Source: Macrostomum lignano (Eukaryota). Taken from it: DNA of 48,050 nt. The stretch lies in the NCBI GenBank assembly GCA_002269645.1, contig NIVC01004377.1, forward strand, positions 1 through 48,050, in the 5' to 3' direction. Numbering within the stretch: position 1 is the first letter of the stretch; each line of letters begins with the position of its first letter. A model generated the notes under the pieces. That model was not told where the DNA came from, searched no databases, and saw only the letters and a program-made list of their open reading frames with translations. This document shows, piece after piece, positions 6,772 through 9,700 of this stretch. The position numbers were made by a program, and so were the translations under genes.

Positions 6772-9700
6772 TTAGTCTGAGTCTGAGTCGACCACGCGGT
6801 TCCGTTCGGCCTGCAGCCACTCGGAGTTCTCAAATAGTCGGGCGAAAATACGATTATTCGTGGCGCTGTCCTTGCCGAAGTACTGCACCTGAATCTTCTG
6901 TCTGACCCTCAGCTGCAGGCTCTTGGCGGTTTTGATCTGAAATAAACAAATAGAGATTAAGTCAACGGAGTAACTAACTGATTAACAAAATAATTAACTA
7001 ACTATCTAACTAACTAACTAACTAACTAACTAACTAACTAACTAACTAACTAACTATCTAACTAACTAACTAACTAACTAACTAACTAACTAACTAACTA
7101 ACTAACTAACTAACTAACTAACTAACTATACTAACTAACTAGCTAACGAACTGACTGACTAACTAACTGATTAACTAACTGACTAACTAACTGACTAACT
7201 AACTAACTAACTAACTAACTAACTAACTAACTAACTAACTAACTAACTAACTAACTAACTACCTAACTAACTGACTAACTGATTGACTAACTAACTATCT
7301 AACTAACTAACTAACTAACTAACTAACTAACTAACTAACTAACTAACTAACTAACTAACTAACTAACTAACTAACTAACTAACTAACTAACTAACTAACC
7401 AACTGACTAAATCACTCACTTTAGTTGGGTCCGAGTGCAGACTATTGTTGGCGATGAAGAAGACTTCCTGACGGCCTTCAATTTTGACCCAGACGCCCTC
7501 CTTGGTGATCTTGATGATCTCGGCCTCGTAAGTTTTGCCATATTCCAGCTTGTTCCTGCTGCGCCGCCTGGCAAGCCACAGGACGACTTTCCTGTACACC
7601 CAGTGCAGGATGATGTACAGGAAGCCAAGGACGGACCCGATACCGACGGCGGCAAATAAGCCGGCAAAGTAGCTGAAGCTGAGCGGGATTTTGTCAGCCG
7701 GATTGATCACTGATGTCGGGCACCGGTTCAGGCCGAAGTACTTCTTCTCAAGATTCTGATACTCGGAATAGCGAACAGAGTTAAGAAACGACCTTACTTC
7801 GTTAGTGAACGGGTAGTTCTTGCGAATCATGGTGGTCTCGTACACCACCTCTTCAAGCGGCCCGTATGTCTTCAGTACGCAGTCTTTGGTCTTCTGATAG
7901 TTAATTGTTGTAGCAGAATCGATGTAAACATAGCGATCGTTGGATTTGAGTGTTTCGACAGCGGCTGCGGCTGACGGCTGTAGCATGTCTTCTGGCCAAT
8001 TCGCTTTGGCTGTCTGCACCAGATTCGGCCAGCGTCTCTGCACGGTTGTGTAGGCGATTGAGTTGTTCCAAAATATGGCTCGATAAGATGTGGCATTTTG
8101 CAACTCGGTGATGGTTGTGAACGGAACCGACTCGTCCGGCTTAACTAAAAACGGCACCAAGTTGCTCACGTAGGTGGTCATGTAGAATAGCGTGGAAAAC
8201 CACAACAGCAGGGTGAATAAACGAGCTGACGGCTTGCGGGGCTCTGTCTCCACCTTGGACATCAGGAAGGAGCTCAGTACAAGGAAGAATGATGCCATGA
8301 AGCTGAACATTGGCTTGTCGCTTTTATTAGGACTGATCTTGTCGCTGACAAACAGCGTGACAGACAGTACAACCATGGAGAACATGATGCTGATCCATAC
8401 GTACCAGGAGAACGGATAGAATACATTGAAGAAGTCCAATGGATGAATCGTCCTCTTGAGTAGCATTAGCAGGCCAGACTGCACCAGATTGATTGACATA
8501 TCCGCCGCCTGAAGTCGGTCCGACAGAGCAAACATGAAATTTGCCGACATGTCTGCCCTCTGAAATTTTACAAAGGCGATACAATATCATTGAGAAATTC
8601 TAGCGATCGAGGGGTCTTTATCCAAAATATTCAAACTTTAAACTGCATGAGTACCAGCAGGCTTAATCGAACTGATGGGGCACTTACATTCTCGGTGAGG
8701 TATCCCATAATTCCAGTCCAGCTTCCGTCTGGTTTTTTCGAACCGTAGCTCCCATCTTCGGCAAGCAAAATCTCGAATTGAAAGCCGAGATTCCTCTGCA
8801 TCAGCAGGATGAGATCGTAACTGATGCCGGTGAGTTCTCCGTTCAAGTTTTTGTAGAGATAAGGCTGGTCCTAAAAGCAAATATATAAATTCATTGTTGT
8901 ACTTCTGCTCTAAGGGGCGTTCGTTTTCTAGCTATGTAGCTAGTACCTATGAGCTATTGAAAGGCCACTTCCAATACACCAAACTGATTATTCAACTCTT
9001 CAAAGGCGCTTGGGATTCACAAAGGTGTCCACTCAGCGTCCTTAGCGACGCCTTCGACTGTTGTCCCCGACCGTCACCAAGGACGCAGGCTGGTTGCCAT
9101 AGCGACAACTATACGCCTGATGTTGAGCCAGCATAAAAGCGCCGTGCTCTGTGTACCAGACAACATCGAAGTTAGTACTCGACTGTCTTCTGGCTGACGA
9201 AATCATCATAGACACGGCCTTTGGATTGCCAAAATATTGCTTGGGCATATTTTTTGCATACTTTTGCATACTTAGTAAAACAGCTTTTTACTTTCGGTTC
9301 AGTAGCAAGGAAGAATACGTAAGCTTTATATATATTTTTTTATAAAAATAAAGGCAGCTGAAATAGCTTTGATAAGTTTAGAAGCCCAAGCTTGCAGGCG
9401 TAAACAACTTGCTAATTGGTTCAGCAGTAATGTACATTAGCCTGTCCGCTGAAATGTACATGGCAGCTTTCGGCTGGAATTCCGAGAAAGGCAATAAAAA
9501 TCGGGACGGGTTGGGGGATAGGGTGGAAAGGCGCAGTTGGGGGGTTTAAGCTGGGGGCGGGGGTAGCGCAAGCAACCGCGGTACTAAAGGGACCAAAATC
9601 CTATATACTAAAAATTTGTAAACTAGAAAAGAATTCTACTGTTTGTTCTATCGGGCTAAATGTCCTTTTAAGCTTACCAGAACACCAACAAATCGAATCA

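Follow-up and report, generated by a model that had tools for sequence, protein, structure and literature searches.

An ionotropic glutamate receptor-type channel of Macrostomum lignano with a PNPT1-like S1 tail, and its relatives in other flatworms

Introduction

Does the flatworm Macrostomum lignano carry a gene in which an ionotropic glutamate receptor (iGluR)-type channel ends in an S1 domain of the kind found in the mitochondrial polynucleotide phosphorylase PNPT1 (PNPase), and if so, where did that domain come from and what might it do beneath a channel? The question is raised by a minus-strand gene, BOX15_Mlig009170g2, in the 48,050-nt stretch of DNA analyzed here (assembly GCA_002269645.1, contig NIVC01004377.1, positions 1 to 48,050; hereafter the window). 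The iGluRs described so far have, to our knowledge, cytoplasmic tails that are either short or intrinsically disordered and in which linear motifs are found.

We found that the window gene belongs to a conserved family of S1-tailed iGluRs. The architecture, origin and conservation of the tail, taken alone, we regard as close to certain. We give an even chance to the reading as a whole, in which a conserved family of tetrameric channels would use PNPT1-derived tails to bind RNA or another polyanion in docking or modulation. A first-pass annotation of this DNA had put the fusion forward as new and as a feature of one gene. The first part stands, in that full-text literature searches returned no published description of an S1 or OB domain on an iGluR; the second does not, as members of a conserved family were already in the databases. 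What is new here is an iGluR subfamily, apparently specific to one lineage, in which the cytoplasmic domain is folded and captured and whose members carry wrong or uninformative names.

Gene structure and transcript support

GenBank annotates BOX15_Mlig009170g2 (protein PAA47654.1, 881 aa) on the minus strand of NIVC01004377.1 at 6772-13978, from ATG to stop, which agrees with the start and stop read from the DNA. By exact spliced mapping all ten exons of the 881-aa protein were placed on the window and the protein was reproduced at 100%. From the N-terminus it consists of a signal peptide, an N-terminal region, a bipartite ligand-binding domain, M1-pore-M3 and M4. Past M4 there is a basic linker of 15 residues, then an S1 domain of 77 residues and finally an acidic C-terminus. 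The features are as follows.

13978-13864, 12774-12634, 12538-12290, 11926-11742 and 10786-10733, minus strand: exons 1-5, by spliced mapping
10489-10292, 9893-9678, 8870-8688, 8559-7420 and 6936-6772, minus strand: exons 6-10, by spliced mapping
13904..13978, minus strand: signal peptide MLSPASLLCLLLLALCPLPQPGSAQ, judged by eye from the sequence, no predictor score
8688..8870, minus strand: exon 8, 183 nt, phase 0-0, core of ligand-binding lobe 1 (DQPYLYKNLNGELTG...GYLTEN), by Pfam Lig_chan-Glu_bd at 1.3e-16
7420..8559, minus strand: exon 9, 1140 nt, with the end of lobe 1, M1, pore loop, M3, lobe 2, M4, linker and first 43 S1 residues in one frame
8347..8412, minus strand: M1 (FSWYVWISIMFSMVVLSVTLFV), by its position within the Lig_chan match
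8260..8307, minus strand: pore loop / M2 (FSFMASFFLVLSSFLM), by sequence and family alignment
8143..8226, minus strand: M3 with the diverged gating motif TTYVSNLVPFL, by sequence and family alignment
7594..7677, minus strand: M4 (FSYFAGLFAAVGIGSVLGFLYIILHWVY), by sequence and family alignment
7549..7593, minus strand: basic juxtamembrane linker RKVVLWLARRRSRNK, 15 aa, length nearly constant across the family
7420..7548, minus strand: first part of S1 (LEYGKTY...HSDPTK), predicted strands 1-3, by phmmer, family profile and AlphaFold model
6937..7419, minus strand: intron 9, 483 nt, GT-AG, phase 0, position kept in five family genes
6936-6772, minus strand: exon 10, the last, encoding IKTAKSLQLRVRQKIQVQYFGKDSATNNRIFARLFENSEWLQAERNRVVDSDSD; TAA stop at 6774-6772
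6835..6936, minus strand: second part of S1 (IKTAKSLQ...YFGKDSATNNRIFARL), predicted strands 4-5 with the PNPT1-type YFGKD motif, by phmmer, profile and AlphaFold model
6772..6834, minus strand: acidic C-terminal extension FENSEWLQAERNRVVDSDSD and TAA stop, not conserved in the family (14.1% identity after S1)

Exon 9 (8559-7420) is in phase 0 and free of stops; its acceptor AG lies at 8561-8560 and its donor, GTGAGT, at 7419. Its product reads ...HWVYRKVVLWLARRRSRNK|LEYGKTYEAEIIKITKEGVWVKIEGRQEVFFIANNSLHSDPTK, where M4 ends ...GFLYIILHWVY and is followed by the linker and then by LEYGKTYEAEIIKITKEGVWVKIEGRQEVFFIANNSLHSDPTK. The first-pass annotation had described M1-M4 and the first half of S1 in a single 1140-nt stop-free exon, an S1 domain starting about 15 residues past M4, and a phase-0 GT-AG intron leading to the rest of S1 and a stop at 6772. 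Each of these was confirmed, and its coordinates, quoted strings, exon length, intron phase and stop were all correct.

Public models of the window gene differ in length (783, 831, 844 and 881 aa). UniProt A0A1I8HFD1 (783 aa, M. lignano), whose tail was 100% identical to our 97-residue query in the exhaustive HMMER search described below, skips exon 8; when exon 8 was restored to it the product was an 844-aa protein, exactly UniProt A0A1I8J7W2, in whose cluster PAA47654.1 is found. Exon 8 has clean AG/GT boundaries and is included in the transcript-based models, and the transcript-based 881-aa model uses the longer exon 6 (10489-10292). By exact look-up neither the 783-aa UniProt model nor a bacterial-style open reading frame (ORF) at 7387-8550 was on record as a called gene.

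The NIVC01 annotation was built from a genome-guided RNA-seq transcriptome (PMC5730564), and the NIVC01 models that carry the tail are therefore transcript-derived. The tail is present in PAA47654.1, in the duplicates PAA47537.1 and PAA71902.1, in the partial models PAA55390.1 and PAA45879.1 and in the paralog PAA64932.1, where M4 is joined to S1 by splicing over two introns. Transcripts that stop short of the LEYG start of S1 had been named as one way in which the fusion could fail; the RNA-seq-derived PAA47654.1 runs through LEYG to the stop. Another was a chimeric assembly at the junction. Five near-identical copies on five different M. lignano contigs carry the M4-S1 junction, which excludes a one-off chimera.

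The wider form of this concern is that the fusion is an artefact, produced either by chimeric assembly at the microsatellite intron or by a gene-prediction join with a PNPase fragment. About 440 nt of intron 9 consist of a (TTAG)n array lying between the two halves of S1, which is a typical misassembly site, and the public models of the gene disagree as given above. However, a single uninterrupted exon runs from M4 through the linker to residue 43 of S1, the S1 sequence resumes in exon 10 without any shift relative to PNPT1, and the junction is present on the five contigs and in a 96%-identical duplicate whose intron is 1939 nt long. With an annotation based on transcripts, and with the same architecture in distant species, in some as a single intronless ORF, the probability of an artefact is in our judgement negligible.

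The channel region

The channel region matched Pfam Lig_chan (PF00060) at 1.6e-20 with 73.8 bits against a cutoff of 30.8 and over the full profile (1-145). Exons 8-9 matched Lig_chan-Glu_bd (PF10613) at 1.3e-16 and SBP_bac_3 at 8.7e-07, and the precomputed Pfam matches for PAA47654.1 are PF00497, PF10613 and PF00060. About 380 residues lie between a signal-peptide-like start and the ligand-binding domain, and the N-terminal region of one relative gave a weak ANF_receptor match. An indexed protein search with the channel part found no iGluR or ionotropic receptor (IR) relatives. On sequence grounds the window protein is a channel of the iGluR superfamily, as had been proposed for it.

An arginine at the position expected to bind the alpha-carboxylate of an amino-acid ligand is present in the window gene (LSDR) and in the member P0003 and absent from four other aligned members, in a part of the alignment where identity is low. 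Since this residue is not conserved across the family, we leave the extracellular ligand unspecified and consider glutamate uncertain.

Fold and origin of the tail

When the tail alone was compared with 177,635 PDB sequences the only match was the S1 domain of human mitochondrial PNPase (E=1.4e-6), to which it is about 40% identical along 74 residues. When 11 tails of the family were combined in a profile, human PNPT1 was matched at E=3.1e-15; Rrp5 came next at 0.012, and bacterial PNPases had E-values of about 0.4. These matches to PNPT1 go far past what chance would give. Because the profile favors PNPT1 so far above the next S1 domains, an origin of the tail specifically from a PNPT1-like sequence is supported. 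Neither the window protein nor any other member of the family had a Pfam match to the RNase PH domains or to the KH domain; the window protein is thus not a PNPase, and it is the last domain alone that would have been captured from one.

A single-sequence AlphaFold model of the tail was poor (pLDDT 65.6, Foldseek matches only at E>=0.05) and was superseded by a model made with the family alignment. The latter reached a pLDDT of 72.7 with five strands at 6-14, 18-23, 29-33, 57-65 and 72-76. In Foldseek it gave 35 PDB matches at E<=1e-3, and the best 50 matches listed were all S1/OB domains; human PNPase (9kjr_A) aligned at 2.8 Å over 76 columns with 38% identity. The tail is accordingly modelled as a five-stranded antiparallel OB barrel of the S1 fold. 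The PDB match, the profile, the AlphaFold model and Foldseek thus agree with the earlier identification of the tail as an S1 OB fold related specifically to animal mitochondrial PNPase.

It could be argued that the tail is an S1/OB domain of some other origin, for instance from Rrp5, eIF2alpha or a bacterial donor, and that it resembles PNPT1 by chance. By Foldseek E-value human PNPase is slightly outranked by several S1 domains from proteins other than PNPases, and therefore the fold alone cannot single out PNPT1. In the profile search, on the other hand, no other S1 domain did better than 0.012, compared with 3e-15 for PNPT1, and human PNPase is alone among the Foldseek matches in combining the fold with high sequence identity (38%). 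The YFG(K/R)D strand motif is common to the tails and human PNPT1 and is absent from the E. coli PNPase sequence. We consider another origin very unlikely.

The GC content at third codon positions of the tail (0.72) resembles that of the channel (0.68), and the intron has a GC content of 0.28. A local PNPase donor for the tail was considered and rejected, the window holding neither a PNPase gene nor a second copy of the tail.

Members of the family

To find relatives, the 97-residue tail was run in an exhaustive, index-free HMMER search against 1.84e9 representative proteins at E<=1e-3. There were 14 significant matches, of which three were repetitive proteins with multiple short matches and 11 were proteins with M4, a basic linker and a C-terminal S1 tail. 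No genuine PNPase was among the matches at this threshold. Indexed protein searches with the channel plus tail, the tail alone or the tail alignment returned nothing, or just two short fragments. The members are as follows.

Window gene and PAA64932.1: M. lignano, two genes
A0A0X3NVQ4 / A0A0X3PEC1 (P0006, P0018): Schistocephalus solidus
VDN96190.1: Rodentolepis nana, two tandem genes fused in one model
CDS33345.1: Hymenolepis microstoma
KAL3315716.1: Cichlidogyrus casuarinus, a monogenean
Further members on several contigs: Logan / ENA runs

Fusions of M4 to S1 in related genomes, which had been suggested as something to look for, were thus found in a second M. lignano gene, three tapeworms and one monogenean. 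The named members cover Macrostomorpha, the group within Rhabditophora to which M. lignano belongs, and Neodermata (Cestoda and Monogenea). The spacing from M4 to S1 is 11-20 residues in every member, with a linker of about 15 residues that is nearly constant in length. P0003 and P0009 are single uninterrupted ORFs, and P0012 has M4, linker and tail in one exon.

Full-length, intronless members of 857 and 861 aa were observed in apparently genomic contigs from two sequencing runs (our contigs L002, run ERR14224705, and L006, run DRR639055). The L002 contig, which holds P0003 as a 2574-nt ORF, comes from a coral long-read DNA metagenome of Tara Pacific (PMC13083261). As this run is a DNA metagenome, the ORF is an intronless genomic copy and is not transcript evidence. 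The intronless copies in L002 and L006 may widen the taxonomic range of the family.

Database names of the members include 'PBPe domain-containing protein', 'S1 motif domain-containing protein', 'Polyribonucleotide nucleotidyltransferase 1' and, for CDS33345.1, 'glutamate receptor ionotropic kainate 1'. Both S. solidus entries bear the polyribonucleotide nucleotidyltransferase name; P0006 was scanned and had Lig_chan as its sole Pfam match. The S. solidus transcriptome shotgun assembly was annotated with Swiss-Prot best-hit names (PMC4891850). The PNPT1 name of the S. solidus entries is a best-hit artefact of the S1 tail, and from the style of naming these entries are likely of transcript origin.

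Two gene models in the family were seen to be composite or suspect. In VDN96190.1 (1263 aa) two S1-tailed iGluR genes that stand in tandem in R. nana are run together (our contig L005, UZAE01000077.1, ~9900-11073 and 22691-24571); the first copy has a full tail (...YFGKDSNGRTKLFCRHFPE) in the DNA, but VDN96190.1 truncates it and joins the next gene. P0015 (974 aa, MetaClust, in the 90% cluster of P0005, the M. lignano paralog) has a G protein-coupled receptor-like end (...NPVIYTIFSPDFR...) and is probably another merged gene model.

Intron position, conservation and selection

Five genes, drawn from three lineages, have a phase-0 intron directly after one and the same Lys codon of S1; its boundaries read as follows.

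DPTK|IKTAK: window gene
DPTK|KMTAAD: M. lignano paralog
EEHIK|FPASKK: C. casuarinus
SPLK|VYNAID and NPVK|VYNALD: the two R. nana copies

The shared position of this intron indicates that these genes go back to a single fusion gene. An extra intron separates the M4 linker from S1 in the M. lignano paralog and in the tapeworm genes and is missing from the window gene.

Regional conservation was expressed as mean pairwise identity in an alignment of six members. The S1 tail was the highest of all regions.

S1 tail: 35.4%
M1-M3: 29.0%
M4: 22.9%
Ligand-binding lobe 1: 19.7%
N-terminal region: 18.7%
Ligand-binding lobe 2: 17.5%
After S1: 14.1%

Between the tails of the R. nana tandem copies 57.5% of residues are retained, with a proportion of nonsynonymous differences (pN) of 0.26 and a saturated proportion of synonymous differences (pS) of 0.75 that gives no usable tail-only ratio. 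Two M. lignano duplicates compared over 881 codons have 10 synonymous and three nonsynonymous differences, a pN/pS of 0.09 that applies to the whole coding sequence; the tail has one change, I to V, and so yields no usable ratio of its own, and the introns of the same pair differ by 2-8%.

These data bear on whether the tail is a recently exonised, functionless fragment of PNPT1 that is decaying by drift. The sole tail change between the M. lignano duplicates is nonsynonymous, and there are too few events there to establish constraint. The tail is nevertheless the best-conserved region across Macrostomorpha, Cestoda and Monogenea, these groups have the S1 intron position in common, pN lies well under saturated pS between the R. 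nana copies, and no PNPase is closer to the window tail than the other tails are. Decay of a fragment without function is therefore extremely unlikely.

The (TTAG)n-bearing S1 intron is 483 nt long in the window (6937-7419) and 1939 nt in the 96%-identical duplicate (NIVC01001128.1, our contig L007, 9436-11374). Introns 1, 3 and 6 also carry tandem repeats, the length of which differs between the window gene and this duplicate.

Putative role of the tail

The positions through which S1 domains contact RNA were taken to be those of E. coli PNPase, F19, F22, H34, D64 and R68, and 12 tails were compared at them. The stacking position equivalent to F22 is aromatic in nine of the 12 (W804 in the window gene) where human PNPT1 has Met, the Asp equivalent to D64, which is the aspartate of YFGKD, is retained in 8/12, and a basic residue is often found near the R68-equivalent position. 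In all, 2-3 of the five classical RNA-contact positions are retained. The S1 core is clearly basic (net charge >= +4) in 7/12 tails and has a net charge of +6 and an isoelectric point of 9.8 in the window gene. The S1 domain of human PNPase is required for binding of structured RNA (PMC11851098).

In the mechanism that we propose, a single capture event would have brought in the S1 domain from the 3' end of PNPT1, the gene of the mitochondrial PNPase, no later than in the ancestor shared by rhabditophoran flatworms, and purifying selection would have acted on the tail ever since. The protein would form a tetrameric ligand-gated cation channel like other iGluRs, with four S1 domains clustered under the inner mouth of the pore. 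Their most likely ligand would be RNA, whether single-stranded or structured, or some other polyanion, and in this way RNA or ribonucleoproteins (RNPs) may be docked at the receptor, or the bound ligand may modulate assembly, localisation or gating of the channel. The functions put forward in the first-pass annotation, which were RNA anchoring, coupling to local translation and gating by RNA, likewise stay at the level of proposals. A role in RNA or polyanion binding is favored because of the aromatic residue at the F22-equivalent position (9/12), the Asp of YFGKD (8/12) and the basic cores (7/12). Judged from these residues, the binding step is a tentative one that we place at or a little under an even chance, and we prefer it only slightly to an RNA-independent role in assembly or as a scaffold.

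Several observations weigh against the proposal. The Pfam S1 model (PF00575) gave 18.8 bits with the tail alone and 15.7 in context where the cutoff is 22, and the best score in the family, 20.2 bits for P0005, is also under it; of the two comparisons suggested in the first-pass annotation, the one with PNPT1 thus gave a clear match and the one with Pfam S1 fell short of the cutoff. The equivalents of F19 and H34 are lost, the latter being Pro in most tails and Ala in the window gene, and the remaining S1 cores, among them those of the hymenolepidid tapeworm tails and of one M. lignano paralog, are near neutral. In the channel, the M3 gating motif has diverged from SYTANLAAFL to TTYVSNLVPFL, and the tapeworm members are more degraded (e.g., IYSGSMMTIL). 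Subunits of iGluRs form tetramers and the end of their M4 is cytoplasmic; for the window protein, channel function, tetramer formation and a cytoplasmic tail are inferred by analogy with iGluRs in general. The named matches include no trematode or planarian, and with several members on Logan / ENA contigs the restriction to flatworms is provisional. Finally, the human PNPase S1 domain also docks protein, as D713 binds the Suv3 helicase and does so without effect on RNA affinity (PMC11851098).

This last point leads to the alternative that we take most seriously, namely that the architecture and history are as described but that S1 serves as a protein-protein module with no nucleic-acid binding. 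It might form a self-associating ring that controls assembly or export from the endoplasmic reticulum, or a dock for scaffolds or motors that replaces the disordered tails and PDZ ligands of other receptors. OB folds frequently serve in protein binding, and the human S1 domains, which are mobile, pack together as three in the closed state (PMC11851098). The window gene and some other tails have an Asp at the position aligned with D713, two of the five positions classically in contact with RNA are not kept, several tails are neutral, and the near-constant spacing from M4 to S1 would fit a fixed structural ring. However, the aromatic residue at the F22 equivalent has been kept or regained in 9/12 tails although human PNPT1 has Met there, which base stacking explains better; the majority of tails are basic, and no candidate partner is known. 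We regard a pure protein module as possible, with a probability that is appreciable and clearly below even.

Comparison with known systems

The iGluRs, whether of AMPA, kainate or delta type or the divergent protostome IRs, share with the window protein a signal peptide, a long N-terminal region, a clamshell domain, M1-pore loop-M3 and M4. The flatworm tail differs in being a folded S1 domain and the most conserved part of the protein; the SYTANLAAF motif and the ligand arginine are diverged or not conserved in the family. With PNPT1 (PDB 9kjr/9kjt/9njb) the tail has in common its LEFG..Y.A.I start, its IQV.YFG(K/R)D end and its extreme C-terminal location. The S1 domain of PNPase is mitochondrial and present in three copies, whereas the flatworm tail is expected to be cytoplasmic, tethered to the membrane and presumably present in four. 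The flatworm tails also tend to be aromatic at the F22 equivalent, which is Met in the human protein, and have lost the His equivalent to H34.

A parallel is seen in the cation channel TRPM2, whose C-terminal NUDT9-homology domain, captured from a mitochondrial enzyme, helps to sense cytoplasmic ADP-ribose. There, too, the cytoplasmic C-terminus was copied from a mitochondrial nucleotide-metabolising enzyme, which offers a precedent for a captured S1 domain that senses RNA. TRPM2 differs in belonging to an unrelated channel superfamily and in having captured an unrelated fold, and its ligand binding has been demonstrated by experiment whereas the flatworm case is sequence-based. By analogy the four S1 domains might act as a cytoplasmic sensor of RNA or polyanions that tethers mRNAs or RNPs, or that lets RNA set gating or conductance, which we consider doubtful.

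If RNA binding is confirmed, these would be the first ligand-gated ion channels that bind RNA directly. A folded domain of nucleic-acid-binding type on an iGluR tail, conserved more strongly than the pore, is unexpected and may represent a new form of coupling between a channel and the cell interior, possibly through RNA. The family would also be a clean, datable case of exon capture from the gene of a mitochondrial enzyme, for which the shared intron is a marker. The named members are all from flatworms, including parasitic tapeworms and a monogenean, which makes the family a candidate for a class of receptors specific to this lineage and relevant to parasite neurobiology; its entries in the public databases need correction. 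M. lignano is amenable to RNAi, in situ hybridisation and transgenesis (PMC5730564), and the question of function is therefore directly testable.

Other features of the window

On the minus strand at ~21100-22950 are ORFs that resemble a degraded, frameshifted non-LTR (long terminal repeat) retrotransposon. One of them (22197-22517) reads ...FVDFRKAFDSV..., which is reverse-transcriptase-like; the two longest gave no Pfam match at E<=0.01, and the assignment is by this motif alone. Downstream of the receptor gene, at 143-5327 on the minus strand, is a multi-exon gene of the aldehyde oxidase / xanthine dehydrogenase type with short introns and a 3' end beyond the window, which encodes a [2Fe-2S] domain (Fer2_2, 2.7e-29), an a/b hammerhead and a molybdopterin-binding domain. 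A large multi-exon gene at ~32770-47300 on the plus strand matched the first ARM-repeat domain of KNTC1 (Rod) at 1.2e-07 and 3.4e-05 and is broken up by long minisatellite arrays at ~37200-38830.

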